Assembly (NCBI GenBank): GCA_002269645.1
Contig: NIVC01001656.1
Coordinates: forward strand, 1 to 42,743
Direction: 5' to 3'
Origin: Macrostomum lignano
Taxonomy: Eukaryota
Length of the DNA stretch: 42,743 bases
Shown: piece by piece, positions 4,207 to 42,410 of the stretch
Position numbering within the stretch: position 1 is the stretch's first letter
How the letters are laid out: the number at the start of each line of letters is the position of its first letter
Program-made: the position numbers and the translations under genes
Notes under the pieces: model-generated
Database searches by the model: none
What the model saw: the letters and a program-made list of their open reading frames with translations, nothing else
What the model was told of the DNA's origin: nothing

Positions 4207-5624
4207 CTAGGCGCTGAACTATCAGCTACGAAACAAAGACAGAAAGCACGAATATTCTTTGTAGATATTTTTTGTAGATATCAATGCGAATCCATGTCTA
4301 ATAGTAGCCATGAATGTATTTATGGTTCGTCATGCTGCTCCACCGAGCAAAACGATCATGTGTACAGATGCATTTCGATTCGGATGTTTTTAATTCCGTA
4401 ATTTATTGTAAATTTCATTTTTTTATAATGCGATATTTATTCAGAAAAAAAGTTTTGTTAAAGACATTTAACAATTGGCCCCATACAAGCGCAGCTGCTT
4501 TTTATGCTTCATCATAGGATCTGTAAAATTTGTAAATACACCAACTATCAATTGCAGTTGAATTCTTGTGTATCTAAGCCTGTCTTTTTTATGCGTTACT
4601 TATCGAAGACTGTCCAAAATTGTCGCAAGCAAAAATTACGAGCGCATATCTGAATTTTGATATACCTTAGTACAACATGCCAATATTGTTGCAATGCACT
4701 CAGTTGTCGGCAGAAAAGGGAACTTTGTGTCGGAAAATCCATGGAAAAACCGTAGAATTGCCATGACAATAAAGCAATTCATGTCTAGCCTAGCGTCTAT
4801 TTTTGTACTTTGTACTTGCTTGCTTCCAGTTGGCGTTCGTAGCTTGAATAAAAAAATAGACCTAAATTTTGAGGGAAATAACTAATGATAACAATAGCTT
4901 TTCATACCATAATTTCGGGATCCTCGGGACATATGCGCAACTATTGCAAAACTGAACTAAGTGTATTTATTAATAATTTAAAATTGATCAGATTTTGTTT
5001 TAGCGATAATTAATTTCATTATCTTCTATAAGCGGCTACTTTAAGTAGGAAAGAGAAGAGAATGTGCTCAAGTGCGAATTTTAATTAAACATTTATGACT
5101 AAAAAGATTCCGATCATGTTTGTAGGGTAATTTATTACGACTACTTACCAATTTTTTTGCGAAATGGAATTTATGCAATTAAATTTAAACTAATTAAAAC
5201 TGAGGCTGTGACAAAACAAGAAAAAATTGATGCTGCTTGTAAACTTCGTCAAAGCTTACAAGACTTGGTTAAAAACTGGTTATAAATGGATACAAGCAGA
5301 TGAATAGGAGTACTGTAAGTAGTTGATAAACATTTTCGGGTATTTTTTGAGACATTTTTAATAAAGTTTTCCGTTCCACCAGAGTTTAAGAGTTCCGAGA
5401 TATGCTTGTAGTTGGGGTCGTCAGGGTTATTTCTAAAGTATCAAATTGTTCAGTCGGGGTCGAGGTGGCATGTAGCTACCATTCAAAAGTACTTTTGTTA
5501 GTCTCCGTTCAAAGGTATACTCGTATTAGTTGTGGTCACTTCAAAGTTAGTTAAAGTAAATTTAGGTAAATTCGTGTTCGCATGAACAGTCTTCCATTTT
5601 TCATCTCAAATAGAGGCGCTTGTC

Positions 5625-8600
5625 TCAGTCCTCTAGCAGCATGCGGTTCTGCTTGGCGCTCTGCAGCTCCTTCCGGGACTCGTGCATCTGACAAGCAGCC
5701 TGAGTCAGGTAGCGCCTCCTCCGCTGCCTGCCCTCCTTCTCTCGCAGCAGATCCAGGATGTCCACCTGGTGGCTGCCGCCGGCAAACAGTCGAGTTATCT
5801 CGGCAACCAGCTTTGTGGCCACGCCGTCGAGCATGTGGCACAGCACTGACATTGGCACCGTGTCCGAGATGCGCTGACAGGCCAGCAGCAGGTAGGCTCT
5901 GGTTCCCAGGCGAATTCGCTCCTCGTTTGATGGGTCGCTTGAGGCGGCTTGTGCTGGCAGCCGCCTGCAAGAAATGGTTAAGGATCTTGTATTAGGATGG
6001 ACTGAATTTTACATTGCTGCACCAACGGGCTCCAGGTCCGAAGGCACCATGCCTATTCAAAGCAATTATTTACTGAGGAATACGATGTGTCGCTAGGAAC
6101 TCCTGCCATTGCGTAGTAACGTAACTCAGTTTTTCCGAAAACTGGCTGTCCTGAGTGAACAAGCGTCGCTCGTGTGCAATAAGCTTAGCCATATCTGTCC
6201 GACACTCAGCCTCTTGGGCTTCGATCGCCTTGACAACAGTTTCTTTCACAAGTAGCAGCAGCCTTGGAAACGCTTTGAAACAATTTTCGGCCAGGTTTTC
6301 AAGCGTTTTAGTAACTTTAGACTGCACGTTATCGAGTAGCCACTTCGCTAGGTCTTCTATTTTTGGCAAATATTCTTCGAATACAATCTTTTGAACAACA
6401 GGGAACACAAATGTGAAAGTCGGAAGCTCGCGTCCTCTTCTAAGCTGCACCTCGTCTGACACACCATTGGGCACTTTTTTCGAGTAGTCAATGATCCAGT
6501 CTGAAATAGAGAGTTTTCCATGGACGTTGTTATATAATGTAATTTGGGCTGCTCTGGTGGCGAGCCAAGGAGCTTAAAACAATATATTTAATCGCCCTGC
6601 CTCTTAGCACGTAGGCGGTGGAGGTCAGGGCCATAGACATGGATATACTAATAAGAGTCGATCCACATCATCTCCCCTTTCAATTCAGTGTCCTTATCAC
6701 TCGACAAAATTAACTTTTGGATGTCCTAGCCTACTGTACTGGAGTCGGGCGGGCGGGATGCCCTTCGTTGCTCTCGAGCTACTTCGAGGTTTCTCCTTGC
6801 TTGGTTGATTGGCCGTCGTAGTACAAGTCGTCTCCGTACGTCTTGTACTTTCGCCGTTTGTCGTCTTTGTCATTTTTTAGTTGTCGGCGGTCAGTGGCAA
6901 TGTTGGCCGTACGTAAATGCCGTTTCTCCGTAGTATTCTGCCGCTCGCCAACTTTACCAGGTAGTCGCGGTGTTTTTCCGACCTCTACCACTACTCCTCT
7001 CCGTTGCCACGGTTTCGTTGTTGGCTCTTGAAGAACTACAGTCGACCCTATTCGGATTCCATCGAGGCTTCTCTTGGACTTGTTTGCTCCACAGCCTCGT
7101 GAACTTCTGATGCTGTGTCCTCCATTTGTTTAATCGTGTTGTACCATTCGGGATTAAAGCTTCTTCGATGAGCAGGAGTGAATCTCTCTTGCTGGGTGTC
7201 CATACAGCATAATAGAAGGAATGCGTCCGTCATACATAGGTGTGTTTCTATAGATAAGTATTCCTTCCGCCATTTTGTCCTTGTTTATGTCATTGTTGCG
7301 ATAGTCCCACGATCCTCTGATGATCTTTTTGGCTGACTTGACTGCCGCTTCGGCTCTCCCGTTGCTTTGGTGGTGGTATGGGGATGAGAATCTGGACTCG
7401 ACTCCCCATCTCTTCAAAAAGTTACCAAATGCGCTGGCCTTGAACTGAGGACCTGAGTCTGACCAGAACAATTCCGGTACAGCTGTCTGACAAAATAGCT
7501 CACGGCACGCGTTAATCAGCTTGTAAACCGGAGCATTTTGTCCGAAGTTCCATATGTTGATCGATCCAGAGTATCCGTCCACTATCATTAGGAATTGCCT
7601 GCCGCGGTGTTCACAAAAGTCAGCATGAACTTCCTGGAAGCACCTTGCTGGTGTAGTTCTCGGCAACATCGGTTCTCTGACCTGACTTGGACGGGTTTCT
7701 TGGCATGCTTTGCATTGCTTTATTGTGTCATCGATCTGACGTTCCATGCTGGGCCAATAGACGACCATTCTTGCTCTTGCTTTGGTCTTAGTAGCACCTT
7801 GGTGACTTGAATGTAGTGTTCTCAAAACTTCTTTTCGCATTTCTTTAGGGATGATACAACGGCATCCATTGAGAACGACTCCGTTTTAGACGACAAGCTT
7901 ATGTCTAATGTGCCAGTACGGTCTTAGATTAACTGGAAGATTAGCTTTATCGTTCGGGAATCCATTCTCTATTACTTGGATAAGCTCTTGCATTTCTGTG
8001 TCCTTCTTTACGTGTTCTTGTATTCTCTTCATGTTAAAGTCAATTTCCCTATCTTCCATTACCATAGTCAACAAATTCACACTACTTAGAGCTTGATTCT
8101 CATCAATCTGATCTTCTTCAGTTGCATTTGCAATCGGAGCTCTTGATAGTGCATCGGCATATACATTGTCTTTACCTCGTACCCATTTTGCTTCATAGTT
8201 GTAGCGATTAAGCTTGGCACGAAGGCGCTGCAACCTCGGGTTTTCGATTTGGTCTAGTTGGTAGCCGTTTAATATCGGAATAAGTGGCTTGTGGTCAGTC
8301 ACGATTTGAAATGAATCGAGTCCTTAAAAAACAAGAGAGTCCATTTTTGCGAAGCCCACACAATTGCTAGAAACTCGAGCTCGATCATAGCATATCGCGT
8401 CTCCGCGTCAGCCAGAAACCGTGATCCTGCCTGAATCATTCGCCAGGCGCCGTCAGGTTGTTGCTGCTTGAGAACAAATCCGAGTCCCTTCAACCTTGAT
8501 GCGTCGGTGTGCAGTGCGGTTGGCTTCGTGGGATCGTAGTATGCCAATGATGGGACTTTAGACAGATGGATTCGTGCCTTATCAAAGGTTTTTTGGTGCT

Positions 8601-11600
8601 CCTCGTTCCAGATGAATGAATTCTTCGCGCTCAGTAGAGGTCTTAATATCGAGGTACATTCTGCGATCGAATCTGTGAATGGTCCTATTTGATTCACTAG
8701 GCCCATAAATGCGCGTAATTCTGTAACATTTGATGGCTCAGGGAATTGAGCAATGGCTGCTGTCATGTCAGGGTCCACCTGATAGCACTTTAGTGTAAGG
8801 ATAAATCCAGCAAACTTTACATTTTTCTTGGCGAAGACAAATTTTTTCTTATTCAATGATATTCCACTCTCGTCACACCGATAAATAAATTCGCGAACAG
8901 CTTGGATGTGGCTTTCGTAGTCGGCGCTTGCGATTATGCAGTCATCCACAATGTGGCGAGTATCTTTCAAGCCCTGTAGAACACTATCCAGTCTCCTGTT
9001 GTAATATTCTGAGATAGAGCTGATCCCGAAAGGTGCCATTCTTAACATGTATGTTCCATAAGGAGTAATAAATGTTGTCAGTGGCATACTGTCTTCGTGG
9101 AGTGGTACTTGATGGGATCCTTTCAATGCATCAACAACTGTAAACCGTGCGTTGGATACATTGGTGCTGGCCACAACTTCCAGTGGTGTTGGTGATTGGT
9201 ATCGAGGTCTCAGAACGTATTTGTTTATCTCTCTAAAATCTACGCAAAGACGAATTTGGTCAGTGCCCTTCTTCGGGGCTACGACTATTGGAGCGCACCA
9301 GGGTGTCGGCTCTGTTATTTTGCAGATAATTTGCTGTCTTTCCAAGGCATCGAGTTCGTTTTTAAGTTTTTCATGCAGTGGCAGTGGTAGCCGGCGTGGC
9401 GTCTTCAAGGAAAATGGGATCGCGTCCTCTTTGAGCACAATCGAAAATTTTTCGCCCTTCATCGGCCGAATTACTCCGTCGAAGACCCTCGGGAATTCTT
9501 GGATCAAATCCAGTTCTGTATGTTTTCTTCCGTCATTCGTCAGAACCTGAGTTATCTGGTTTATCTGACTTGGAAACTCTTTAGGGATGATTCCCAGTTT
9601 TCTACAGCTCTTCCAGGACAGCACTGGCGCGACCAAGTTCTTCAGCACATGAATCCTTGTCGCTGCGTGCTTCCCGTTCAGCGTTATTGTGGCGGAGAAA
9701 TTGCCGTCACTCTTAATGAACTGTCCACTGGCTGATTTAGGAAATATGGCGTCATGCCTTAGTTGTGCAACACGGATGCGGAGCTTTTTGCAATCGCATT
9801 CTCGGATTGCATCGATATTGGATCCCGTATCGGGCATCATTTCCAGCTGCTCCCCATTTATCGAGACTACTACTGTTGGGGTTGCGGGTTCCAGTGTAGC
9901 AACCAAAGTTGAGATTATCGGTGGTCGCCTTTATCCGGATGACCAGTGCTGCGACTGGACCGGCACATGGAACCAAAATGTCCAATGCGACCGCAGTTAA
10001 AGCACTTCTTGTCCTTGGCGGGACATTCTGAACGCTGATGTCGCCCTTTACCACAGGCAGTGCATTTCTTTGCTTCTGGAGTCTTTGATCGAGCCCCACC
10101 TCGCTTTGCTCGCCTCGGAACCATTAAATGCAGCCTCGGACATTCTAACCCATGGATGAATGAATAGAATGGATTGCTATTCTGGCTCTGGCTATTTTCG
10201 TTTTTGACTCTTTTGCATCCGGTTCCCCCCCGTGCCTTTTCATTGGTTGATGATTGCCATAGACAATTTCGCTCGTGTTTTGAAATAAAGTGGGAAGACC
10301 TACGAGCGCTCGATATTCTCTGCAAGTAACTGACATTCTCAGTTCTTTGCGCTTGTGCATCGAAAGAAAGGGGCGAAGGCCGAAAATTGTCTATGGCAAT
10401 CATCAACCAATGAAAAGGCACGGGGGGGAACCGGATGCAAAAGAGTCAAAAACGAAAATAGCCAGAGCCAGAATAGCAATCCATTCTATTCATTCATCCA
10501 TGTTCTAACCACAGAATGTGAATTAAACGGCGTTTATTATTTACTTAATCGCCCTGCCTCTTAGCACGTAGGCGGTGGAGGTCAGGGCCATGAACATGGA
10601 TATACTAATAAGAGTCCATCCACATCAGACGTCAAGCAACGACGAGTTTAGCATAAAGTGAAACATTTTTTAAACTGTGCATGGATTTTGTGCTAAAACA
10701 AAAGCAAGATTAAAATCGACGATTACGATACAAGCTTGTTACAAGTATGTGTTACAAGTATTTACAACTAAAATCTATATTTCGCATAGAAGCGCCCCGT
10801 GCGCCAGGAAACTCGTAATCAATAAACAACTCACCAGGCTGACTCCTGCTCACAGAGTAGCCAAAGCTGGAACAATTAGTCAGACAGCTGCTGTACAGAC
10901 TGCTGGAGCTGCCCGTGGCGAATGCGTCCCGCTCATCTTCTGGACTGACCGTGGCGGCGTGTACTTTTGAGGCAAACTGCTGCAGCTTGCGCATCAGGTA
11001 GGCTCTCTTGTCGCTGTCTGTCTCGCACAGGCTGTCCTCCAGGTCTTTCAGCTCGTCTTCGTAATCCTTCAGCTTGCTCTGTGAGAAATAATTTTTTTAA
11101 TTTAGTTCAGTTTGCGAGCTGTCAAATCAAAACGATTACGTGTACATTCGGTTGACCCTAAGCACGCATGCGCACATGAAAACAAGCGCCAAATAGAAAT
11201 CTGACCTGAAAGCATTCAGCCACATCAAGTCTTATATATTACGTAATGAAAAAGTAAACTGCTATTCTGTTTGAATGCATATCCGCTGACTAAGGGCAGC
11301 AAACTTCTTTAACCAGAGGACAAGAGGAGAGAGGAAAAAAGAGAAGACCTGATAAGAGAGATACGATCAGAAGAGACAGGATTAGTCGATTAGAGGTGAT
11401 AGGAGGGAGAGAGTAAAAAAGAAAAGAGAGGAAAGAGAGAGGAAAGAGAAAATAGGGGAGAGAGGAAAGAAGAGGGGAGAGTGGAGAGAAGAGGGGAGAG
11501 TGAAGAGAAGAGGGGAGTGAGGAGAAAAGAGCTGAGAAAATACATTAACCTTGAGTGGGCGGGATCGCATATAAAGTATTTAAAGTATTTAAAGGCCGGA

Positions 11601-14082
11601 TGGAAAGGCTTTGAGGACTGAAGTTCGCCAACTCCCCCGTGGAGCTGACTTTCTCAGTCGGCTTACCTTCAGACTCTCCTCCAGAGTCTCAATGCCCGCC
11701 GCCACTGCCTTGAACAACTCATTTGTCAGCTTCTCTGCCAGCGTCTTTGTGCCAACAATATCCTTTGGCAGCTGGCTGAAGTGCGGATCGTTTCTGAAAT
11801 AATCCTCCTCGATTTTGGCCACCTCGCTCAGACTAATGTTGTTCCTGAGCTCCTTGGGGCTGCGGCATTTCACCATGACAAAGCCTTTGTGCAGTCGCAC
11901 TCTGCCTTGGTTGTTGACGATGGCTTTGATGTCCTCCTCGCTGCCAGGGTTGGTCAGGTCCGGGCAAGTCAGGACTCCGATCGTCCTGGTGCCCCCTGGG
12001 TCCACCTGTTTGGCTAGAGCAATGGCCTCCACTGTCTCGATGTCCACGCTGCAGGGTACAACAACCAGGATGATCACCTGGTCCTGGCTGATGTAAGACA
12101 GAATCAGCTGCTTGGTGACCTCGTTGATCTTCGGATTCTTCTCAGAGTACCTGGCAATGCCGGGCAGGTCAACCAGGGTGAGGTCGGACACATCCGCGCT
12201 CTCAATGGTCAGGTCGATCTGCTCCGTAGACACGCCGTTCGAGTCGCCAGTGATTTCGTTTTGTACTTTGCGCACCATTTCGTCTACTTCACATTTTTTC
12301 GATATTTTACGCTCGACGTGCTCGCCCTTGCGATTTTGGTAGCTGTTGTCAGGGGTTGGAAGGGTGTCTTGTCAGAAAAGGCTCTTAGGAGAGCAGGAAA
12401 CGACACTTGTGAAATTACAGCTGGTTAACTTTGAAGACATTGGAATGACTTTTGAAATACTTTAACCCATGTATCTTTGTAATTTTGCAGCCTGGAGTAC
12501 TGGAAGAACGTTTTCTCGACGAAGGCAAATGATGTGCTGCCCAGCAGCAGTTTACAAAGGGGATGTGAACTTAAGAGTAAAAATGGAGTTCGAAACATTC
12601 GGTCCTGATTTTTCTACGCCAATCCCTTCATTTGGAGCCAAAAAGCTGCCGTCATGCGAAAACCCGAACACTTTAGCATTTGGGGATCTCTATGGGGAGA
12701 AATGGTTGTGGGGGAGCTTTGCACCTTTGACACGATATAAATGTGCGAAAATGATGTTTACCACCCTCCGTCTCAAAACTTCGGGTTAACCTCCGCTTCG
12801 TCGAGGTAGAAATCGTCGGTCTAATATGTGTGATACAAACCCCCCTTGACGAGAGCTGGGGTGGGGAAGATAACATAAACATTATTAAGAAACAACATAA
12901 TGGGGGCATTAAATAACATTACTATCGCTCCTATTCTTCCTACAAACATGAAAAGTGCCAAAAGGGGAGCGTATATTATGGTCATCTCGTTTTTTAAGCG
13001 TTTGAAGCTCCAAATGAAGGCATTGGCGTAGAGAAACCGGGACCCAATGCTTCATGCTCCATTCTGGAACCTGAAGTTCACATGAATTCTTCCCCATTAA
13101 TCCCATTTCTCCTCATAGGGATCCTCAAATGCTAAAGTGGTCGGGTTTTCGGCATAACGGCAGCTGTTTGGCTCCAAATGAAGGGATTAGCGTAGAGAAA
13201 CCAGGACAGAATGTTTCGGGCTCCATTTTTGAATCCCAAGTTCACATCCCATTTACTTTTCAACTTGACTTTTTATTTCAATCTAAAGTGCCTGCTAGTT
13301 TTCAGCAGAAAGGAAGCTAGTTCATTTCGGGCCTGTGCGGCCACATTTATTTGGGACAAATATTGGCCAGTTGGTTGTCCGTGTGGGGCCCCTGTGCACC
13401 TTGTGTGAGTGTGTGGGAGTTGCGTGCCTGTGTACATTACTGGCGCTCTTGTATGTACTCAGGGGTCAGTAGAAAGGGCAGAATAGCCTCATTGCTGGTA
13501 TTTCATATCATGCAGTGTAATTGAGAAAATGTTTTTTAGCAAGACAAATACCCGCGCTGTCAAATCTGTCAAAATTTGCTAATATTTGCAAGATATTTTT
13601 TATGTGCATTTAATGTCAATTCAGAAAGGAGTTCTAAGAAGGTGAATTGATAGAACTATAAAAATGCTCACCTAATCCTACCAGTCCAGTCTCCAGTTGG
13701 CTTTGAGCGCATGCTCAGCTGCAGCGGGCAGCGAGTCACAATTCCGGTACCGCGCGGCAAGTCCACGCCCGAGATGGCCTCCAGCACGCTGGATTTGCCT
13801 ACCGATTGGTCGCCCACAACGGCTACTGTGGGCAGGCGGAGCTCATTTTGTAGGCCGTGCGACCGGAGACGATCGATGCTGTTCAGCACTGGCCGGATTC
13901 GCTCGCGATACTGCTGACTGAGCGCTGGAGTGAACGTCTTGGAGGCGTCTGCAGCAGCGCTTAGCAACACAGTCTCAGTGGCATCGGGGCTCTTGACCTG
14001 TTTCGCCGGGGTCGGGCCATCGGAGGACTTGTGCTGCTGTGGGAGAAAAGGTAGTATTGTTCGTACTGCTAGTAGTAGTAAC

Positions 14083-14126
<44 letters not shown>

Positions 14127-14244
14127 CAGTGGAAAAGTAGTAGTCTTTTACTGAAATGTAGCGCGGTAAATTTTATGACTGAGCACTACAAAAATGATTT
14201 ACCCGCTTGTTTGACGACAAATTTGGCGAACTCCGCGATGACAT
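5625..14244 (-). CDS. Mx-like dynamin-family GTPase, copy A (~697 aa); exons 14244-14203, 14036-13672, 12342-11667, 11078-10835, 6500-6074, 5964-5625
   Basis: [31 protein letters not shown] (TRCPL is Mx-type), [21 protein letters not shown] and a C-terminal GED (AYL...RISDTVPM...LLRE); no PH or proline-rich domain. Six exons total 2094 nt in frame, with GT-AG junctions. Confidence 0.88.
6528..6670 (-). repeat. 3' LTR (143 bp) of the gypsy element
   Basis: Bounded by the PPT and the TSD; 6588-6670 matches 10545-10627 with 3 mismatches in 83 nt. Confidence 0.85.
7154..9906 (-). pseudogene. pol: Gypsy pol: aspartic protease, RT, RNase H and integrase, disrupted
   Basis: PDTGS (protease), HIVDDCII (RT), LHTDAS and TDHKPL (RNase H), HQG...CKAC (integrase Zn finger), D-D-E in VHADF/WSDSG/GRAEAAV. 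Frameshift near 8320 and in-frame TAA at 7886-7888. Confidence 0.9.
9915..10140 (-). pseudogene. gag: Gag nucleocapsid remnant with two CCHC zinc knuckles
   Basis: [14 protein letters not shown] and [14 protein letters not shown] (CX2CX4HX4C); the upstream gag region is missing. Confidence 0.85.
10151..10502. mobile_element. MITE (352 bp) with ~121-bp terminal inverted repeats, nested in the gypsy element
   Basis: 10151-10271 is the reverse complement of 10381-10502 (one indel); termini CATGG...CCATG; 8-bp TSD TTCTAACC at 10143-10150 and 10503-10510. Confidence 0.88.
10545..10627 (-). repeat. 5' LTR remnant (83 bp)
   Basis: Direct repeat of 6588-6670; the rest of the LTR, the PBS and most of gag appear deleted. 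Confidence 0.8.
11291..11640 (+). mobile_element. hAT-like MITE relic with GA-rich core in Mx-A intron 3
   Basis: Ends ggcagcaaactt ... gaagttcgccaactc resemble GGCAAACTT...AAGTTTGCC-type hAT MITE ends; related copies at 18057-18268 and 21200-21485. Confidence 0.45.
12560..13253. repeat. Long imperfect inverted repeat (arms ~12560-12710 and ~13100-13253), probable foldback/MITE, in Mx-A intron 2
   Basis: The reverse complement of 12585-12705 aligns to 13103-13220 at roughly 85% by eye; a further direct copy of part of the arm lies at ~13006-13083. Not present at the equivalent position of Mx-B. Confidence 0.7.
13310..13500 (+). mobile_element. Degenerate tRNA-derived SINE (family 2) in Mx-A intron 2
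   Basis: Body ttgtgtgagtgtgt...tgcgtgcctgtgtaca..actggcgctc is shared with 19279-19530 and with the reverse complement of 25250-25535. Confidence 0.5.
14070..14128. repeat. (TAG)n microsatellite in Mx-A intron 1
   Basis: Direct reading; a degenerate counterpart is in Mx-B intron 1 (~20115-20175). Confidence 0.9.
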
Positions 14245-14540
14245 TTCAGGTTTGTATAGTACGTCTGCTATACAGAATCCAAAAAATGAGTTGCGTTTTC
14301 GAAACTCAAAGTCAGAGAAAACAAATTGCCGGCAGGGCAAAATATTTTGAATAAGAACAACGGGCAGTACAGTGCATATTCACACTCCCATTTAAGCACT
14401 GATACACCACTGTCCGTTGGAATTTCTACAGGGAACGATAATGATAAACTGTACACCCTTTTCATCCATGTACATACGCTCGTATAATGAACTGCGCCAA
14501 AAATTTCCAAAAGATTCCTGCAGATGTGCGTGTGAACTAT

Positions 14541-14549
14541 TTCCTGGAA
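14541..14549. promoter_or_regulatory. GAS/STAT-type palindrome TTCCTGGAA ~300 bp upstream of the Mx-A ATG
   Basis: Exact match to TTCYNRGAA; function untested. Confidence 0.4.
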
Positions 14550-14654
14550 ACCTGTTTTTTCTGTGCTTTTTTTCTCGCAGTAAGAGCTAGTTTCATGTGC
14601 ACCCTTCGTACTACTGACATGTTACGAAGGGTGGCATCAGTATGCCTAAGTGTA

Positions 14655-14806
<152 letters not shown>

Positions 14807-16371
14807 ACACGTAAATAGCACATGCAGCGCATGGCAAAGCTTCAGCAGCTCCCATCCATTTCAGCCAGAGATCAAAGGCGAGGCTGCAATTTGACCTGGA
14901 CGGTTGACAAGCGGAGACGGCCGGCCGGCGAATTCTTAATGAGCCCAGCGCGGAGGCCGCTCCTGAGGAGGAGCCGCAGTGCAGGCCCGGGACCGACGCC
15001 CAGCCCCGACCTGGCGTGGCAACTGAGGGGTGGATGCGTTGGCCGGCCCGCACAGAAGGACAGTAAACGAACGCAGAACTGAGCTCTCCCCTGACGCTCT
15101 AACGCAACCAGAGCAACTCCGCAGTCTAACCGTCCAGCCCCCGCCCCCGTAGTAACGGGCCATGTCTAGTGCTGTTTTAATTGCATGCGCTGTTTGTGTA
15201 AACCCTGCCGTCGTTAGGAAAGCGGCTCCCCATCTCATCGACGGCAAGGGATGAAATTGTAGAAAACTCATAAATCCTAAAGAAGCCCTAAGAGGCACGC
15301 TAATCCTTTCGGTTTTGAAGTTTAAAATGTGTAGACAAAGAGAAGCATCTCCGGTAGTTGTCTTTTGTTCCACCGCTGTCTGATGGCAGAAGATAACCGG
15401 TGTTTAAAACATCGAAAACATCGCGTTATGCATGCATTGTTGCTGTGTATTTTGTTATTGGCAGAAAGACGAACTTTGCATCGGACATTTCTGTGAATAT
15501 AACAGCAATTCATATCTGGTCGCTATTTTTGTTCTGCGTATTTGCTTTAGGTTGGCATTTGAAGCTTGAAATGAAAGCTAAACACATGTGTCGGAAGAAA
15601 TAACAATGATATCCAAACACAAATAGCTTTCCCTAATTTAATATAATTTTAGGACACTGCAGTTGCAATAGGAAAATTTGCTCAACTCGAAATTTTAACA
15701 AAGTGTATTTAATAACAAGTTAAATTTGTTTGCTTTAGAGATTATTCCTTTTCATGACTTCTTGAGGCAAGTATTGCAATAGTTTACGAAGAAAAGAGAA
15801 CAAAACATGCTCAAGTGCGAATTTTAATAAATAGATTACGATTAGAGACGTGTTTAACCATGCTTTTAGATCATTAAAACTATCATAAAACTATCATAAA
15901 GATCATACAAACATAAAAACTTTTAGATTATTAAGATTTATTGTGAAATGGAATTCCTGCATTAAATACTAATAAAAACTGATCGTGCTGCAATACAATT
16001 AAAAAATTGAAGCTGCTTAAAAACTCCGCCCAAGCTTACAAGACTTGGTTAAAAAAATGGTTATAAATGGATACAGGCAGATGAGTACTGTAAGTAGTTG
16101 ATAAACATTTTCGGGTATTTTTTGAGACATTTCTAATAAAGTTTTCCGTTCCTGCAGAGTTGAAGAGTTCCGAGATACGCTTGTAGTTGGGGTCGTCAGG
16201 GTTATTTCTAAAGTATCAAATTGTTCAGTCGGGGTCGAGGTGGCATGTAGCTACCATTCAAAAGTACTTTTGTTAGTCTCCGTTCAAAGGTCACTTCAAA
16301 GATAGTTAAAATAAATTTAGGTAAATTCGTGTTCGCATGAACAGTCTTCCATTTTTCATCTCAAATATGTC

Positions 16372-19300
16372 TCAGTCCTCCAGCAGCATGCGGTTCTGCT
16401 TGGCGCTCTGCAGCTCCTTCCGGGACTCGTGCATCTGACAAGCAGCCTGAGTCAGGTAGCGCCTCCTCCGCTGCCTGCCCTCCTTCTCTCGCAGCAGATC
16501 CAGGATGTCCACCTGGTGGCTGGCGCCGGCAAACAGTCGGGTTATCTCGGCAACCAGCTTTGTGGCCACGCCGTCGAGCATGTGGCACAGCACGGACATT
16601 GGCACCGTGTCCGAGATGCGCTGACAGGCCAGCAGCAGGTAGGCTTTGGTTCCCAGGCGAATTTGCTCCTCATGTGACGGCTCGCTTGAGGCTCGGCTCA
16701 CTTGAGGCTCGGCTCTCTTGAAGCCCCCTTGAGACGCCCTTGTGGTTGGGCTTGCTTGAGGCTCGCAAGAGAATCGGATCGGCTGTGATGCTGCCGGGGC
16801 TCCGAAACCCGAAAAAAAGGTTGGGCTGAAAAACGGAACCTCCTCTTTTACATTGGATATATAATAACTATTCCATTTGTAGTGTTTTTAGATCCAAATG
16901 TGAGAGGCATAGCCAGGAGTTTCGTAGTAGCTAGGGACGCTTCTTTGAGTGCGAGGAACAAGGGGCGTCAGCTCCTAAAATCCTTCGTTAAACGCCCAAT
17001 TAAAGCAGTTACTTACGGAGGAACAGGTTGCTTAGCCAACTCCTTTTGTTGCTCTGTAACGTAACGCAGTTTTTCCGAAAACTGGCTGTCCTGAGTGAAC
17101 AAGCGACGCTCGTGTGCAATCAGCTTAGCCAGGTCTGCACGACACTCAGCCTCTTGTGCTTCGATCGCCTTGACAACAGTTTCTTTCACAAGTAGCAGCA
17201 GCCTTGGAAACGCTTTGAAACAATTTTCGGCCAGGTTTTCAAGCGTTTTAGTAACTTGAGACTGCACCTCACCGAGTAGCCACTTCGCCAGGTATTCTAT
17301 TTTTGGCAAATATTCTTCGAATACAATCTTCTGAACAACAGGGAACACAAATGTGAAAGTCGGAAGCTCGCGTCCTCTTCTAAGCTGCACCTCGTCGGAC
17401 ACACCATTGGGCACTTTTTTTGAGTAGTCAATGATCCAGGCTGAAATAAAATGTTCGCCATGGACGTCAAGCAACGTCGAGTTCGCGTGGCCAGTTTAGC
17501 ATAAAGAATGAAATTTTATAATGTGCATGGACTTTGTGCTAAAAAAGTCGCCGATTATGATACATGGTTGTTACAAGTATTTACAACTAAAATCTATATT
17601 TCGCATAGAAGCGCCCCGTGCGCCAGGAAACTCGTAATCAATAAACAACTCACCAGGCTGGCTCCTGCTCACAGAGTAGCCAAAGCTGGAACAATTAGTC
17701 AGACAGCTGCTGTACAGACTGCTGGAGCTGCCCGTGGCGAATGCGTCCCGCTCATCTTCTGGACTGGCCGTGGCGGCGTGTACTTTTGAGGCAAACTGCT
17801 GCAGCTTGCGCATCAGGTAGGCTCTCTTGTCGCTGTCGGTCTCGCACAGGCTGTCCTCCAGGTCTTTCAGCTCCTCTTCGTAGTCCTTCAGCTTGCTCTG
17901 TGAGAAATAAATTTTTAAATTTAGTTCAGTTTGCGAGCTGTCAAATCAAAACGATTACGTGTACATTCGGTTGACCCTAAGCACGCATGCGCACATGAAA
18001 ACAAGCGCCAAATAGAAATCTGACCTGAAAGCATTCAGCCACATCAAGTCTTATATCAGAAGAGACAGGGTTAGTCGATTAGAGGTGATAGGAGGGAGTA
18101 AAAAAGAAAAGAGAGGGGAGAGAGAGGAAAGAGAAAATATGGGAGAGAGGAGAAAAGAGCTGAGAAAATACATAAACCTTGAGTGGGCGGGATCGCATAT
18201 AAAGTATTTAAAGTATTTAAAGGCCGGATGGAAAGGCTTTGAGGACCGAAGTTCGCCAACTCCCCCGTGGAGCTGACTTTCTCAGTTGGCTTACCTTCAG
18301 ACTCTCCTCCAGAGTCTCAATGCCCGCCGCCACTGCCTTGAACAACTCATTTGTCAGCTTCTCTGCCAGCGTCTTTGTGCCAACAATATCCTTTGGCAGC
18401 TGGCTGAAGTGCGGATCGTTTCTGAAATAATCCTCCTCGATTTTGGCCACCTCGCTCAGACTAATGTTGTTCCTGAGCTCCTTGGGGCTGCGGCATTTCA
18501 CCATGACAAAGCCTTTGTGCAGTCGCACTCTGCCTTGGTTGTTGACGATGGCTTTGATGTCCTCCTCGCTGCCAGGGTTGGTCAGGTCCGGGCAAGTCAG
18601 GACTCCGATCGTCCTGGTGCCCCTTGGGTCCACCTGTTTGGCTAGAGCAATGGCCTCCACTGTCTCGATGTCCACGCTGCAGGGTACAACAACCAGGATG
18701 ATCACCTGGTCCTGGCTGATGTAAGACAGAATCAGCTGCTTGGTGACCTCGTTGATCTTCGGATTCTTCTCAGAGTACCTGGCAATGCCGGGCAGGTCAA
18801 CCAGGGTGAGGTCGGACACATCCGCGCTCTCAATGGTCAGGTCGATCTGCTCCGTAGATACGCCGTTCGAGTCGCCAGTGATTTCGTTTTGTACTTTGCG
18901 CACCATTTCGTCGACTTCACATTTTTTCGATATTTCACGCTCGACGTGCTCGCCCTTGCGATTTTGGTAGCTGTTGTCGGGGGTTTGTAGGTAGGAAATC
19001 ACACTTTCTAACTAAAAAGTCAGCTAGTGTTGAAATACTTTAAACAGTGAATATTCCACTTCTTGTAATGTTGCAGCCTGGAACACAGCACACGAAGAAC
19101 GTCTTTTGGACGAAGTCGAGATTTTCTGCGCTCCAAGCTCCAAAATAACAGCCGCGAAATTTTATAGTTTAAGGCTTTCCAAAAGCAGAACTTTTAAAGT
19201 TCACTTTTAAACATTGATTTTTAGCTTTCAACCCGATTTTTCAGCGAGTTTTCAGCAGAAAGCAAAGTACTTCATAGCGGGGCTGAGCAGCTCAGCATTA

Positions 19301-20246
19301 AACGCTCTGACGATCCCTGGCTCGATTCTGTGTGAGCCAACATTCATTTGGGACAAAAGTTGACCGGTGGGTTGTCACTTGTCAGTTAAGGGCTGCATGT
19401 ACACCCTATGTGAGTGTGTGTATGAGTTGCGTGCCTGTGTACATCACTGGCGCTCTAGTATGTGTTTAGGGGTCAGTGGAAAAGGGCAAAATTGCCTCAT
19501 CGCTGGTTGTGGGACGACGTTGCACCAGATTATTTCATTTCCTGCAGCGTCAATCGAGAACAAGAGAATGTTTTTAGCAGGATGAATAGCCGTGCCAGTA
19601 AGTTTAAAAAAATTTTCTAATATTTATGAGTAATTTTTTTCTTCTTACTTAAATTTTCGGTCAGAAAGGAGTTCTAAGAAGGTGAATTTATAGAACTATA
19701 AAAATGCTCACCTAATCCTGCCAGTCCAGTCTCCAGTCGGCTTTGAGCGCATGCTCAGCTGCAGCGGGCAGCGAGTCACAATGCCGGTACCGCGCGGCAA
19801 GTCCACGCCCGAGATGGCCTCCAGCACGCTGGATTTGCCTACCGATTGGTCGCCCACAACGGCTACTGTGGGCAGGCGGAGCTCATTTTGTAGGCCGTGC
19901 GACCGGAGACGATCGATGCTGTTCAGCACTGGCCGGATTCGCTCGCGATACTGCTGACTGAGCGCTGGAGTGAACGTCTTGGAGGCGTCTGCAGCAGCGT
20001 TTAGCGACACAGTCTCAGTGGCATCAGGGCTCTTGACCTGTTTCGCCGGGGTCGAGCCATTAGAGGACTTGTGCTGCTGTGGGAGTAGAAGTATGTTCGT
20101 ACTTTCGGTAAAAGTAATGGTAGTAGTATTAATAATAGTAATAATAGCAGTAGTAGTAGTAGAAGTAGTAGTAATACCCTCTTGTTTGACGACGAACTTG
20201 ACGTTGACGAACTTGACGAATGGTGTGACGAACTCTGCGATGACAT
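16372..20246 (-). CDS. Mx-like dynamin-family GTPase, copy B (~743 aa); exons 20246-20178, 20076-19712, 18970-18295, 17897-17654, 17440-17017, 16825-16372
   Basis: Same motifs and intron phases as copy A; exons 2-4 have identical lengths (365, 676, 244 nt); total 2232 nt in frame ending in TGA. Confidence 0.9.
18057..18268 (+). mobile_element. 5'-truncated copy of the hAT-like GA-rich MITE in Mx-B intron 3
   Basis: Paralogous to 11291-11640 with a deletion of the left end. Confidence 0.45.
19279..19530 (+). mobile_element. tRNA-derived SINE (family 2) in Mx-B intron 2
   Basis: A-box-like agcagctcagc and B-box-like ggctcgattct, followed by a body homologous to 25250-25535 (reverse complement). 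Confidence 0.6.
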
Positions 20247-20575
20247 TTGAGGTTGATACGAGCTATTATGTCAACTGTACAGAATCGCAAAACTTAATAG
20301 AGTTTTTGAAATTCAAAGTTAAATTAGACGAAATACTGAGTGGGCAGAATGTATAAACCCTAAAAATGCAGTGAGAATAAGAACAGTGGGCAGGAAAGCG
20401 TATATATACACTCGCATTTGTGCACTGAAACATCATTGCACGTTTTTTTCTAGAGTGTACGTTTTTGATCAGCGTATTTTTTATCAGTATAGCTACACTA
20501 TACACTCCGCTCATAAGTGTACATGCGCGAAAGAGCGTAGATCTAAAATGTGCATACCAAGAAAAGCTCTCAAAT

Positions 20576-20926
20576 TTCCTAGAAATAAATTTCTGCAGAT
20601 TTCCACAAACTGTTTCGTACGAGCGTAAAATTGTTTTTTTCGTTGTACTTTTCCCGCAGTAAGAGCTCTACTAATGACATGTTGCTTGCGTGATGTTTTA
20701 AAGCAAGTTGTTACGAGCGTAGTTTTGATAAAAAGTGAATTCGCGTTTAGTGTATCAACTTACGATAGTCAAACGTCTGATGCAGTTGAAAGCTTAGCAA
20801 GTACACTTTGATATCTAACTTACATGGTAGGCAAAAATTTCCAAGAAATTCCAACAGAAGTACTCTTATTCTGATTCCTAGAAATCTCTGCAATATTAAT
20901 GTGATATAAGCGTCCTTTTCTTGGAA
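20576..20926. promoter_or_regulatory. Cluster of four GAS/STAT-type palindromes upstream of Mx-B
   Basis: TTCCTAGAA 20576-20584, TTCCAAGAA 20839-20847, TTCCTAGAA 20875-20883, TTCTTGGAA 20918-20926; each is followed by AT. Confidence 0.55.
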
Positions 20927-21199
20927 ATTGTGTCCTAGTCTAGGTTCTGCTCGTTCCGTGGTTTTTTGTATGCTATGAGGAACTAACATGGTGGTATTCA
21001 TTTTTCACGAGTGGTGAAGCCACGAGTGACTTACATTAATCATCGTCCATGACAAAACCATATGCACAACGCAGCACAAGCACAAGAATGTTTTTTCAAC
21101 ACATTTTCATACTTTACGTATTATTTCTAGATACAATGTGCAACTGTTACGATCTAAAAAATGGAACGTTTGAATTTTCAAATTTCAGCACTTTCTCTC

Positions 21200-21485
21200 G
21201 AGTCAGAGTTGGTCAGCAAACTTCGGCCCGCGGGCCACATGTGACCCACCAAGCCTCTCTATCGGGCCCTGGAGTACTAAGGCTTGCTTAATTAGCTTAT
21301 GTCTCAACTCAGCTCTCTTCTCTTTCCAATCTTCTCTCTTCTCTAGCTCTCCCCCCCCTATCCTTTTATCTTTTCTCTCGCCTCTTATCTCTCCTCCAAT
21401 CCTTCTCCTTAAGTCTCGTATCTGGCTCGCAGGCATGAGCTGGATTTTTTATCTGGGCCTTAAGGTAAAAAAGTTTGCCTGGAGC
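21200..21485 (-). mobile_element. hAT-like MITE relic with CT-rich core
   Basis: ggtcagcaaacttcggcccgcgggcc ... aaaaagtttgcc ends; same family as the 11291-11640 element, in opposite orientation. Confidence 0.5.
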
Positions 21486-21734
21486 CGTGATGTCGACCAG
21501 CACCTCCTGAATAGGCCTTTTCATTAGTAGATTTGAATGTCAGAAAACGGTTTGGCTCGTCAAGTATTTATTCATAAACTTTTTAACTGCCCCAGGTGTT
21601 TTTATTTGATGCGCAATTCAACGAAAAAAACGTACAATTGCAATCCACTTTAGACTGGATGCAGACCCGCAATTAAAAGCGTCGTATTGGCAGCTCAAAC
21701 ACAACAACTAATGTTACTCCAAGAGCTGTTCAGG

Positions 21735-22524
21735 ATGGCAATGCAAGGCTTACAAATCACATTGCTAATTCAGTTTATACTCTGTGATCAGTTTTTGACA
21801 GCTGGCTTCAACGAGCAAGAGTTTCACTCGATTCACGGCAGTTTGTGCGTAAAAGCATCTATACGGAGATTCACTCAAATTGCAATTCAACAAACAAAAT
21901 TAACAAAATTAAATGTGCGCGGCTCTGTGCACCAGAAACCGGCGCTGCCAGGCGTTCAGCCTGGCTGACGGTCCGTGCCAGCTGTTCGTGTTTGACAAGT
22001 GCAGCAAGTCGGTGAGGGACTGCGGCTGCTCCAGGAGAGGCCGGGTGTTTGTGAAGCAGCAGCCGGGACTCGAGGCGGGCGCGCTGTGTCCGTCTTGCTA
22101 CGGAGACGACCTGTGCGGAGCAAAGTACAGGCTGCACTTCGGTTCAAGGAACTGGTCGATGAGTAGACAGAAATGTGAGTCGGAGAGCGGTCTGGTGATC
22201 ATGGCGGATGTTACTGACACCGCAGAGATGAGCAGAGTGAACATCATGTACAAGACATATTGCCCTGGAGGTCAGTTCTGGCTTGGTGGGTACCAAAAAC
22301 CTGGCAGTCTGGAGCCTGGAGAAGGTTGGCACTGGGTCGCCTGCAACATTTCCTTGGACAAAAGTCTGTGGAGCTCTCGCCAGCCAGACAACTATGGAAG
22401 TGAAAATTCTGTCGCAAGATTTGGAACTGCTTTTCCTGGTCTAGTGGACTTCAATGAAGCTGCAAGTGATTTTGCTTCTAAAGGATTTGGAGTGCTGTGC
22501 GAATGTATTTCTCCCTTTAACTAA
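21735..22524 (+). CDS. Secreted PAN/Apple-like plus C-type lectin protein with one frameshift at ~21912 (pseudogene or sequencing error)
   Basis: Hydrophobic leader MAMQGLQITLLIQFILC, PAN-like CAALCTRNRRCQAF..C, and CTLD motifs NWSMSRQKC, FWLGG, WHW, QPDN, VLCEC. Removing one A at 21911-21913 joins the two ORFs; no AG acceptor is available to splice around it. Confidence 0.7.
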
Positions 22525-29889: not shown

Positions 29890-30940
29890 AACTAAACTAA
29901 CTACTGACGGGGGGCGCAGGCGCCGCGAATAGGCCGCGAGGCCCCTATCGCAACCCCAAGGTAAAAGAGCACAAGGATAAGCCTTGGGGGTGCGCCCAGT
30001 CCCCGCCAGTAGTCGGCAGGTCCGCAGTGGAGGCATCGGCGACCCTCATCCGGCCGGAGTCCCGGACGAAGGCGCGGAGGTCTCGGATATTGTCCGCGGT
30101 GGTCAGCTCGTCCATCCGCTGGGGGTGGCCGAGGTATTTGTGCCGCGCCTTGTTGAAGTAAGGGCAGAAGGTGACGTGATGCTCCGCGGTCTCCTCTCCT
30201 ATGCCACAGAAGGGACAGGTGGGAGGGCAACCGGTTTGCAACGATATATGTCTCTGGAAGAATCCGTGGCCGGTTAGGACCATGCACATCTCCCTGAGGT
30301 CGGTTCTGTTAAGCGAAATCAGATAATCAGAGACTTTCCTGTTCAGGTTAGGCATGGCAGAGCGGCTCTGCCTGTACTCGGTGCAGCTGTTCCAGTGGAG
30401 CTGGTGCTGCTGATGGAGCCACCTGTTGATATGGCGGGTGACTTGCGACCTGGGGGTGGGTAGCCTCATCAGACGGTGGTTGCCGTCTGGGTTGCTGCCC
30501 TCCTTGGCGAGAGAGTCCGCGAGCTCGTTGCCCAGGATGTTGCTGTGACCAGGTGTCCAGATAATTCTAATCCTGTTAAGGACTGAGAGAGATTGCACAC
30601 TGCGGTGGCATTGAGATACTGTAGCAGCGGAGATATTCTCAGTGGTTAAGGCCTTAATAGCAGCTTGGCTATCAGTGTAGAAATTAATGTCAAAATTATT
30701 AATGTTCGCCTGAAACAGTTGCTGGGCACACTGCTCAATGGCGCAAATTTCAGCTTGGAAAACTGAGGTGTTCTCACCGAGGTGCAGACTTTCCTGGAGA
30801 AGCATCTTACCCTCGTGGAAAATGGCAATACCCGCTCCAGCGCGGCCGTTGAACAGCGAGCCGTCGGTGAAGCAGTGAATGCCCTGGCTGCGCCGGTTCA
30901 CACCGACATCCAGCGGAATGTTGTCAGAAAGTGTAACCTG
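29890..30940 (-). mobile_element. 3' part of a Loa/R1/I-group non-LTR retrotransposon: intact RNase H, CCHC finger, structured 3' UTR and (TAGT)n-like tail
   Basis: [33 protein letters not shown] (all catalytic residues present), then LTGHG and [18 protein letters not shown]; hairpin cgcaccccc-aagg...ccttgggg-ttgcg; tail tagttagtttagttagtt at ~29890-29907. No RT upstream. Confidence 0.85.
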
Positions 30941-31229
30941 TTGATGTAGGATAATCCAGAACTTCCTGTTTGTGCTCCAGCAGTCACGACAGTATTCATA
31001 TGCAAGGCTGATCGATCTATTAACTGCATATTCATGTAGTAGACTATCGTACATGTACTTTAAAGGCTGTGAAGCATGCAAATGCACATTTACATGCAAA
31101 TAAACACACCTGCTGTTAATTAAATACATGTACCTGCAATCAAAGACGAATCTAGGAGGGGCTACACCTAGGGGGTTAAAGCTGCCTTGAACTACTGATC
31201 TACCAAACAGCTGGAACACCCTATCGCGG

Positions 31230-35500: not shown

Positions 35501-35904
35501 AATGTGTTATCACTGACCTAATCTGCTCCTTGATAAAAGTGCTTACTATTGTAAGAAATAATGATGCCTTTTAAGAAATCCAATAATATATACTACCTTT
35601 TAAAGTTATACTCTATTACTACAAGTATATAAAATCCTTTATATGACATAGCCATTGTCAATTTATAGATCATTGATAAAATATGCAGAATATAGGGCCT
35701 TTGTAAATGCCCATACTATCTTAAAGACTTTGGTGCCAGTATATACATGATGAAATTCATATCATAAGATCATTAAGTCTAAAATACCTATTACAATTTT
35801 CTTAGTACTAATAGATGGCCTTTTATAATATTTAAAATTCTTTACTAAAATTTTAGAGTTTTTAATTCAAAAGAAGTCTTGTGAAATCTATTAATTGATA
35901 AAAA

Positions 35905-37629
<1,725 letters not shown>

Positions 37630-37799
37630 TTGATGGCATTGGTCACGCTCTGAGAGCTGAACTGTGCATTCTGCAAGTGATGTTTACTTGGCTGTTTAAA
37701 AGCTGGATTGCAGTTTTGTTTTGCACTACTGCGTGCTGGTGCCATTCAGGGAAAAACTCAATCCTTAGTTTATTATATAACCTTTGAATCTTTAAGATG

Positions 37800-38115
37800 G
37801 GCCACCGCCTCCCAGATCCCCAGTTGTTGTGCCAGCCTCCCAGATCCCCAGTTGCTGGGCCAGCCTCCCAGATCCCCAGTTGCTGGGCCAGCCTTATTGA
37901 TCCTCAGTTTTTGTGCCAACCTCTCAGATCCTCAGTTTGGGGGCCAGCCTCTTAGATTCTCAGATTCTGGGCCACGATCTCCCAGATCCTCAGTTGCTGG
38001 GCCAGCCTCCCAGATCCTCAGTTGCTGGGCCAGCCTCCCAGATCCTCAGTTGCTGGGCCAGCCTCCCAGAGTGTCAGTTGCTGGGCCAGCCTCCCAAATC
38101 CTCTTATACTGGGCC
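37800..38115 (+). repeat. 28-bp minisatellite (CCTCCCAGATCCTCAGTTGCTGGGCCAG), block 1
   Basis: About 11 degenerate units downstream of UBE2E. Confidence 0.88.
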
Positions 38116-42109: not shown

Positions 42110-42410
42110 TCTTCTTAGATCCGCAGTTGTTGGGCCAACATCTCAATGATGATCCCCAGTTGCTGGGCCAGCCTTATTGATCCTCAGTTTTTGTGCCAAC
42201 CTCCCAGATCCTCAGTTTGGGGGCCAGCCTCTGGGCCACGATTCTGGGCCACGATCTCCCAGATCCCCAGTTGCTGGGCCATCCTCCCAGAGTGTCAGTT
42301 GCTCGGCCAGCCTCCCAGATACTCAGTTTCTGGGCCAGCCTCTCAGATCCTCAGTTGCTGTTCCATACAGCCTCCTAGATCCTCAGTTTCTGAGGCAGAT
42401 CCTCACACTG
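42110..42410 (+). repeat. 28-bp minisatellite, block 2
   Basis: Same unit and same irregular variants as block 1. Confidence 0.85.

Follow-up and report, generated by a model that had tools for sequence, protein, structure and literature searches.

Mx-like genes, a lectin gene and the region between them

[quoted passage not shown] Mx-A lies on the minus strand at ~5000-14244, with its ATG at 14244 and an LTR retrotransposon insertion in an intron. Mx-B, an Mx-like dynamin-family GTPase gene, occupies 15700..20246 on the same strand (start about 15700), with its ATG at 20246-20244. Its first exon (20246-20178, minus strand) encodes MSSQSS...NKR, and is followed by intron 1 (20177-20077, minus strand), which has a GT donor at 20177 and an acceptor before CAGCACAAG, the sequence with which exon 2 begins at 20076 (minus strand). 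This exon 1/intron 1 structure is kept in frame in Mx-A, and the main exons of both genes are all open. Self-comparison of the window delimited the tandem duplication, in which 4955 to ~14600 matches 15697 to ~20670; identity is 90-97% in the gene bodies and 65-84% in the 5' flanks.

The large exon of the Mx genes matches Pfam Dynamin_N and Dynamin_M. Among proteins of solved structure, human MX1 (E 5e-49, 170 bits) matches best, followed by MX2, and a classical dynamin scored 103 bits (E 1e-28) against the same query. Since MX1 and MX2 stand well ahead of the classical dynamins, the label Mx-like is justified, and the flanking gene was correctly described in an earlier account made from the DNA letters (the sequence-only reading). 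The closest database protein is an M. lignano DYNc-domain protein, with which the Mx gene has long identical blocks in common. Upstream of Mx-B, a candidate TATA box, TATATATA, can be read from the sequence at 20403..20410, ~160 bp from the ATG; it is degenerate in Mx-A. Regulatory elements in M. lignano usually lie at most 2 kb upstream of their genes, many of which are trans-spliced, and more than 50% of the genome is made up of repeats (PMC5730564).

The divergent neighbour, a PAN/apple and C-type-lectin-like gene, is located on the plus strand at 21735..22524, with a probable ATG at 21735 and a long ORF at 21913-22524. Its N-terminus from 21735 is signal-peptide-like and reads MAMQGLQITLLIQFILC...GSLCVKASIRRF. 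The N-termini of lectin paralogs align to a different upstream frame than that of the long ORF, and a +1 frame change occurs near 21905-21913, beside a 9-bp tandem duplication and a run of A. Because the paralog N-termini align in that other frame, the gene probably starts at 21735, with a frameshift that is either genuine or due to an indel in the assembly; the interruption near 21910 may mark either a pseudogene or an assembly indel. A single-sequence Pfam search of ORF 21913-22524 gave no match. The closest relatives of the ORF are M. lignano proteins (54-56% identity) to which UniRef gives the name C-type lectin, and the ORF's paralogs show sub-threshold Lectin_C matches. When a five-sequence family profile was searched against solved structures, it matched mosGCTL-1 (1e-5), codakine (6e-5) and a PAN/apple domain. 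These profile matches and the C-type-lectin-named paralogs bear out the previous designation of the neighbour as a lectin. A single-sequence AlphaFold2 model reached a pLDDT of 34, and the identity of the protein rests on the profile search instead. Homolog searches recovered M. lignano UniRef proteins and, from Logan, a single 925-bp contig carrying a paralog of 54% identity; no contig records encoding the lectin ORF itself were found.

Four GAS-type sites upstream of Mx-B

GAS elements are composed of palindromic TTC and GAA half-sites 3 nt apart (TTCNNNGAA), and TTCYNRGAA is their STAT5 subtype. Four exact TTCYNRGAA sites are found between Mx-B and the lectin gene. Site 1 (AATTTCCTAGAAAT, 20573..20586, plus strand; core TTCCTAGAA at 20576-20584) lies within the Mx-A/Mx-B duplicated segment, 330 bp upstream of the Mx-B start codon. 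In tandem with it, 6 bp downstream, a degenerate GAS-like sequence can be read (TTCTGCAGA, 20591..20599, plus strand), whose TTC(Y)TGCAGA portion is also kept in the Mx-A upstream region. Site 2 (AATTTCCAAGAAAT, 20836..20849, plus strand; core TTCCAAGAA at 20839-20847) is directly followed by TTCCAACAGAA (20849-20859), with a 5-nt spacer. Site 3 (TGATTCCTAGAAAT, 20872..20885, plus strand; core TTCCTAGAA at 20875-20883) continues into CTCTGCA, as does site 1, and site 4 (AATTTCCAAGAAAA, 20916..20929) is on the minus strand, with its core at 20918-20926 reading TTCTTGGAA on the plus strand. Sites 2, 3 and 4 fall within 88 bp, at spacings of 36 and 43 bp, and all four are positioned 170-520 bp upstream of the TATA-like box. 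With the Mx-B ATG at 20246, the sites are thus 330-680 bp upstream of the start codon. The sequence-only reading had reported four exact sites at this distance, three of them within 90 bp and all followed by AT, together with a single site ~300 bp upstream of Mx-A. Our coordinates agree on every count: the cores start at 20576, 20839, 20875 and 20918, three of them span 88 bp, AT follows in 4/4 cases, and the Mx-A site, TTCCTGGAA at 14541, is 297 bp from the ATG at 14244.

The resemblance between the four sites extends beyond the consensus. All are TTCCWAGAA, every spacer is C-W-A, and a longer core of 13-14 nt, (A)ATTTCC[A/T]AGAAA(T), is common to them. ATTTC precedes 6 of the 8 half-sites in the cluster (background 0.108), and T occupies position -1 in 7 of the 8 (background 0.35); calculated from flank frequencies, the probability of this flank agreement is ~3e-5. 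By their letters, the four sites are of a high-quality STAT5-type GAS form with the common extended core ATTTCC[A/T]AGAAAT. We take the extended ATTTCC...GAAAT form to be that of the STAT4/5/6 motif derived from ChIP and of the beta-casein STAT5 probe.

Chance expectations were obtained from dinucleotide shuffles, 3000 of the whole window and 20000 of each local region. The window contains 11 TTCYNRGAA sites, compared with 4.0-4.2 expected, a background close to the one site per 10 kb that had been guessed beforehand. None of the 3000 whole-window shuffles held at least four sites in 351 bp or at least three in 88 bp. When the 1666-bp intergenic region was shuffled, 0.17 sites were expected, and for 20470-21000 the expectation was 0.04; in both cases the observed count was reached in 0/20000 shuffles. 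The 351-bp cluster itself has four exact sites where ~0.03-0.04 would be expected. The motif scan against a shuffled background that the sequence-only reading had called for therefore finds the cluster enriched (0/3000 and 0/20000). As a look-elsewhere control, all 64 palindromes of the form XXX-YNR-xxx were scanned. Only CAG clusters more than TTC, and the CAG cluster is inside a satellite at ~37.8 kb, so that TTC alone of the 64 forms a cluster outside satellite DNA.

In principle, pure chance could place four independent matches in an AT-rich intergenic region, and a search of 42.7 kb by eye, with any known motif in mind, does bring some look-elsewhere effect. The shuffles (0/3000 and 0/20000), the flank agreement (P ~3e-5) and the palindrome control, in which the cluster was beaten only by a satellite, nevertheless all speak against such an origin, and chance is already effectively refuted by the shuffles, the 64-palindrome control and the flank frequencies. 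The sites are not independent draws, as they have common flanks and partly a common origin, so that the shuffle P-values exclude chance and not local duplication.

Motifs for other immune and stress factors were also sought. The strict ISRE core, GAAANNGAAA, is absent from 20247-21735 and from the region upstream of Mx-A, so that the earlier statement that no ISRE was evident holds for the strict core. In the whole window this core has two matches only, both inside Mx genes, and the vertebrate-type ISRE, GAAANNGAAA(C/G)T, does not occur in the proximal promoter here. A near-ISRE, GAAATTCAAAGT, is present on the plus strand at 20308..20319 with 1 mismatch to GAAANNGAAAST and is conserved at 14301 upstream of Mx-A; the near-ISRE at 20308/14301 is not above chance expectation. 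No match to the kappaB consensus was found anywhere in the 42.7-kb window, and neither HSE-type (N2) nor STAT6-type (N4) spacings were found in the intergenic region.

The cluster could also be a real cis-regulatory module that is read by a factor other than STAT. This might be a BTB zinc-finger repressor of the BCL6/Ken type in competition for TTCNNNGAAA sites, an ETS protein recognizing the GGAA cores, an NFAT/Rel-type protein recognizing TTTCC, or a protein peculiar to flatworms. BCL6 in vertebrates and Ken in Drosophila bind sites that overlap GAS elements. The common core, at 13 nt, is longer than a minimal GAS and has GAAA(T) always on one side, TTCC/GGAA is found in every site, and a half site of kappaB-like form, GAAATTCC, overlaps site 2. 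Against these features stands the symmetric TTC-N3-GAA with ATTTC on both sides, a hallmark of STAT dimers; moreover, ETS and NFAT sites need no palindrome, and the window is without a full kappaB site. We regard a reader other than STAT as unlikely.

Possible turnover between paralogs and relatedness of the sites

The two 5' flanks differ in their GAS-type sites. In the Mx-A upstream region (14496..14549, plus strand), a decayed counterpart of the site-1 unit, GCCAAAAATTTCCAAAAGATTCCTGCAGATG (14496-14526), is accompanied by Mx-A's own GAS, ATTTCCTGGAAA (core 14541-14549). The site-1 homolog has decayed there to AAATTTCCAAAAG, ~35 bp from Mx-A's own GAS. Conversely, the Mx-B stretch aligned with ATTTCCTGGAAA reads TTTCGT-ACGAGC-GTAAA, the GAS being broken there by a 6-bp indel. 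With site 1 decayed in Mx-A and the other site disrupted by the indel in Mx-B, each paralog keeps one GAS, a different one, ~300-330 bp upstream. Sites 2-4 lie beyond the duplicated segment, which gives Mx-B four sites vs one for Mx-A. As judged from the alignment, the paralog pattern is compatible with turnover of binding sites and with neutral drift in a flank that diverges fast.

Several of the sites appear to be copies of one another. The 31-nt context of site 2, GGCAAAAATTTCCAAGAAATTCCAACAGAAG, is identical at 25/31 positions to Mx-A 14496-14526, the positional homolog of the Mx-B site-1 unit. Outside the core the agreement is 14/18; of the window's 292 TTCC-anchored contexts no other scores as high, and the runner-up has 11. 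Sites 2 and 4 are carried by an imperfect inverted repeat (20828..20937) with 21-nt arms at 20828-20848 and 20917-20937 that match at 18/21 positions, and site 3 sits near its centre. A version with 19-nt arms (20830-20848/20917-20935) matches at 16/19 and has TA on both sides. The inverted-repeat match is mostly the palindromic motif itself, with agreement at 5/8 positions beyond the motif. Sites 1 and 3 have in common TTCCTAGAAAT followed by TCTGCA. Given these copy relationships, copying of a short unit on the spot accounts for at least part of the cluster's growth, and since the sites are related by descent, the enrichment could be a duplication artefact.

Two further candidates at the cluster were discarded. 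A hairpin or non-coding RNA was rejected on the fold z-score of -2.4 relative to shuffles, a marginal value, and on Rfam, which gave no family match over the whole 42.7-kb window. An 84-aa ORF on the minus strand (20747-21001) was judged to be a non-coding by-product of the motif repeats.

The copy relationships bear on the possibility that the cluster is a non-functional repeat relic whose resemblance to GAS elements is incidental. Such a relic could take the form of a MITE-like or inverted-duplication element (TA|GGCAAAAATTTCC...GGAAATTGTGTCC|TA, 20830-20935) with a related solo unit at site 1, of a decayed minisatellite with a 36-43-bp period, or of DNA-transposon subterminal repeats. The 18/21 inverted repeat of sites 2 and 4, with TA either side of its 19-nt arms, would be accommodated by such an origin, as would the 25/31 match between the site-2 context and the site-1 unit as found in Mx-A, the TTCCTAGAAAT and TCTGCA common to sites 1 and 3, and the 36- and 43-bp spacings of sites 2, 3 and 4. 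The host genome is more than 50% repetitive, and sites 2-4 are outside the Mx-A/Mx-B duplicated segment. The repeat searches point the other way. Self-BLAST of the 42.7-kb window recovered no copy of the unit or of the inverted-repeat arms beyond the Mx-A homolog, Tandem Repeats Finder reported no array at the cluster, and local alignment of the site-1 region with the site-2-4 region found no larger duplicated block, the similarity collapsing outside 13-31 nt. The arms agree at just 5/8 positions beyond the motif, and the hairpin is only marginally stabler than shuffles (z = -2.4). Compared with MITEs and with the subterminal repeats of DNA transposons, the cluster is similar in that a short motif occurs in direct and inverted orientation within ~350 bp, and in that a ~106-bp unit has imperfect terminal inverted repeats and flanking TA. 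It differs from them in having no second copy in the window and inverted repeats that are weak beyond the motif; neither a transposase nor another transposon end was detected.

What sets the core apart from its surroundings is that it is intact in every Mx-B copy (4/4), whereas the flanks have diverged or are unrelated. This pattern fits constraint on the core and is suggestive, although it comes from four copies only. On this evidence, a repeat relic is possible but somewhat unlikely.

Proposed STAT control of Mx-B

We propose, with a probability that we would put at about 40%, that the cluster is a STAT-responsive enhancer or promoter module for Mx-B that was built partly by local amplification. 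According to this model, a short GAS-containing unit would have been amplified locally to give, at least in part, the homotypic cluster in the Mx-B 5' flank, whose four STAT5-type GAS elements have the core ATTTCC[A/T]AGAAAT in common. An activated STAT dimer would bind the candidate sites, including the sequence ATTTCCWAGAAAT, possibly with cooperative binding at the full and degenerate tandem pairs of sites 1 and 2. Binding would then raise Mx-B transcription in an antiviral or dsRNA response without an ISRE, and the target would be Mx-B rather than the lectin. The observations on which this model builds are the sites, their enrichment, the extended core, their position relative to the TATA-like box and the gene's Mx identity. 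It gains support from the GAS that Mx-A also has ~300 bp upstream of its ATG, and from the lack of a strict ISRE or kappaB alternative in the intergenic region. Counting against it are the loss of site 1 in Mx-A and of the Mx-A GAS in Mx-B, together with the kinship of site 2 with the site-1 unit and the fact that sites 2 and 4 are inverted copies.

The choice of Mx-B as the target can be weighed against the alternative that the module serves the divergent C-type-lectin gene, either alone or bidirectionally with Mx-B. The two genes are arranged head to head, with their ATGs (20246 and ~21735) ~1.5 kb apart, and C-type lectins are typical immune effectors. The cluster is, however, 0.8-1.2 kb from the lectin ATG vs 0.33-0.68 kb from that of Mx-B, and the lectin reading frame is interrupted near 21910. 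In addition, in the part of the planarian dsRNA-response table considered here, the sole C-type-lectin-like entry, which is COLEC11-like, was down-regulated (PMC8797187). The suggestion in the sequence-only reading that the cluster might be bidirectional with the lectin thus found no evidence, given the distance of the lectin start from the cluster and the frameshifted gene, and we consider control of the lectin improbable.

Work on other invertebrates lends the model of STAT control at Mx-B some plausibility. ADAR RNAi in planarians raises stat5 and mx1 together, in a manner dependent on PRLR1, a RIG-I-like receptor, and the authors hypothesized a role for JAK-STAT signalling in the response (PMC8797187). 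The Schmidtea mediterranea transcript dd_Smed_v6_7128 is STAT5A/Stat92E-like, and the first ~400 nt of stat5 are poorly conserved (PMC8797187). The co-induction of stat5 and mx1 by dsRNA signalling makes STAT control plausible. Searches for M. lignano STAT or Mx literature returned nothing. Both planarian transcripts, stat5 and mx1, have TTCTAAGAA at their 5' ends, which may be a spliced-leader sequence. In the oyster, CgMx requires an IFN-like cytokine for its response to poly(I:C) (PMC8218723).

The candidate module can be set beside several known systems. With the STAT5-type GAS elements of the mammalian beta-casein, CIS and SOCS promoters it has in common the 9-bp consensus TTCYNRGAA, several or tandem copies lying no more than a few hundred bp from the promoter, and A/T-rich ATTTC flanks. 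TTCTAGGAA is the beta-casein STAT5 site, and the full and degenerate pair 6 bp apart at site 1 resembles STAT5 tetramer sites. The differences are that the present sites belong to a flatworm, precede an Mx-like target and are partly duplicates of each other. In vertebrates, ISGF3 is the complex of STAT1, STAT2 and IRF9, and Mx promoters are governed through the ISRE and ISGF3. The present locus involves the same family of antiviral dynamin-like GTPases and proximal upstream control elements, but with GAS-type sites in place of a strict ISRE.

Drosophila offers an invertebrate parallel for the clustering itself. TTCNNNGAA sites are clustered there at real targets of STAT92E (vvl, trh, dome, crb and Socs36E), and such clusters mark true STAT enhancers (PMC2877871). 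Drosophila has a single STAT, which is STAT5/6-like, and non-conserved sites can add to activity; enhancers with only non-conserved STAT sites proved to be JAK/STAT-independent (PMC2877871). That last result urges caution directly here, where site 1 is without conservation in Mx-A. The predictive clusters in Drosophila hold phylogenetically conserved sites, whereas the Mx-A comparison shows turnover. The planarian (PMC8797187) and oyster CgIFNLP/CgMx (PMC8218723) studies are related to the present case through the same superphylum, the induction of Mx by dsRNA or poly(I:C) and the proposed STAT signalling, but they report expression without cis-elements, whereas candidate cis-elements are at hand here.

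The locus bears on whether a cytokine/STAT-to-Mx antiviral link existed before vertebrate interferons. In planarians and oysters, Mx homologs rise with STAT or IFN-like signals, and no cis-regulatory link has been defined. A GAS-only, ISRE-free STAT-response module at Mx-B could represent a direct STAT-to-Mx antiviral circuit in flatworms that predates vertebrate interferon and ISGF3, with amplification after the Mx-A/Mx-B duplication leading to differing inducibility (four sites vs one). We advance this broader proposal tentatively and think it rather doubtful. For now, the locus may be regarded as a lead on regulation, its GAS cluster being of a known kind, and not as a demonstrated mechanism. 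It provides a compact, mutable candidate element with four sites in 351 bp. M. lignano is the one flatworm for which stable reporter transgenesis is established, with promoters of at most 2 kb (PMC5730564), and a candidate element in a transgenesis-capable flatworm makes the hypothesis directly testable. If the cluster is a repeat fragment, it would serve as a cautionary case of how motif clusters arise by local duplication in a repeat-rich genome. If the module is real, its interest would lie in a GAS cluster placed before an invertebrate Mx gene without an ISRE, through which the question of a pre-interferon STAT-to-Mx link would become testable.

GAS-type and near-ISRE matches shared by the Mx-like paralogs

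A further match to the GAS (STAT-type) consensus TTCYNRGAA, TTCTAAGAA, occurs in both Mx-like GTPase genes, at 13632 in Mx-A and 19672 in Mx-B. In each paralog it lies approximately 40 bp past the end of exon 2, which makes it an intronic GAS-type site whose position matches between the two genes. The same sequence is also present in the window at 23567 and 27639. Where it appears at the 5' ends of planarian stat5 and mx1 transcripts, we suspect that it is a spliced-leader sequence and not a promoter element. It is found there in both transcripts immediately before the ATG (PMC8797187, supplementary files 6 and 7). Both Mx-B and Mx-A also carry a near-match to the ISRE (GAAATTCAAAGT / GAAACTCAAAGT, at 20308-20319 and 14301-14312, respectively) about 55-75 bp upstream of their ATGs, with one mismatch relative to GAAANNGAAAST; such near-matches are no more frequent than chance predicts.

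The Mx-B/lectin intergenic region and the lectin reading frame

Between the GAS-type match at 20576 and the three at 20839, 20875 and 20918 is a second short recurring motif, TACGAGCGTA (also AGAGCGTA), with copies at 20617-20627 and 20712-20722, and also at 20529-20539. The copy at 20617 contains a 6-bp insertion that breaks the Mx-B counterpart of the GAS-type site upstream of Mx-A. Closer to the lectin gene is a CT-rich block (ctctcttctct..., 21195-21480) bounded by GGCCCGCGGGCCACATG and GGCTCGCAGGCATG, which is possibly a small repeat element; a second copy was not found within the window.

The lectin gene comprises an N-terminal part (21687-21968), in which an ATG at 21735 opens the signal-peptide-like MAMQGLQITLLIQFILC, and a main ORF (21913-22524). 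The N-terminal part is homologous to the N-termini of paralogs but does not share the main ORF's reading frame, and joining the two requires a +1 shift at ~21905-21913. Next to this frame change are an A run and a 9-bp tandem duplication, AACAAAATT x2.2. Either the gene is a pseudogene or the assembly contains an indel here.

Repeats, retroelements and divergence of the duplicated genes

Simple and tandem repeats include a (GTCT)n microsatellite located at the junction between Mx-A and Mx-B (14653-14805), a long TCTA/TATC-type array (35860-37160), short-period tandem repeats in two places that are related to each other in sequence type (37798-38116 and 42113-42398), and a satellite of ~96-bp period and ~1.2 kb length (39968-41181). 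A 424-aa ORF on the minus strand (29945-31219) with RNase H and RVT_3 matches is probably a retroelement fragment.

An Mx-A intron harbors an LTR-type retrotransposon (6582-10627, minus strand) that has no counterpart in Mx-B. Two direct repeats, each 89 bp long and 94% identical to one another, delimit the element (6582-6670 and 10539-10627), and its ORFs (7154-10421) encode gag zinc knuckle, protease/RT and integrase-like proteins. Identity between the duplicated segments (4955-14600 versus 15697-20670) forms a gradient, from ~97% in a large exon-containing segment, through 90-92% in the remaining, mostly intronic, gene-body segments, to only 65-84% in the 5' flank. This gradient suggests either that the gene bodies have undergone gene conversion or that the promoters have been diverging faster.
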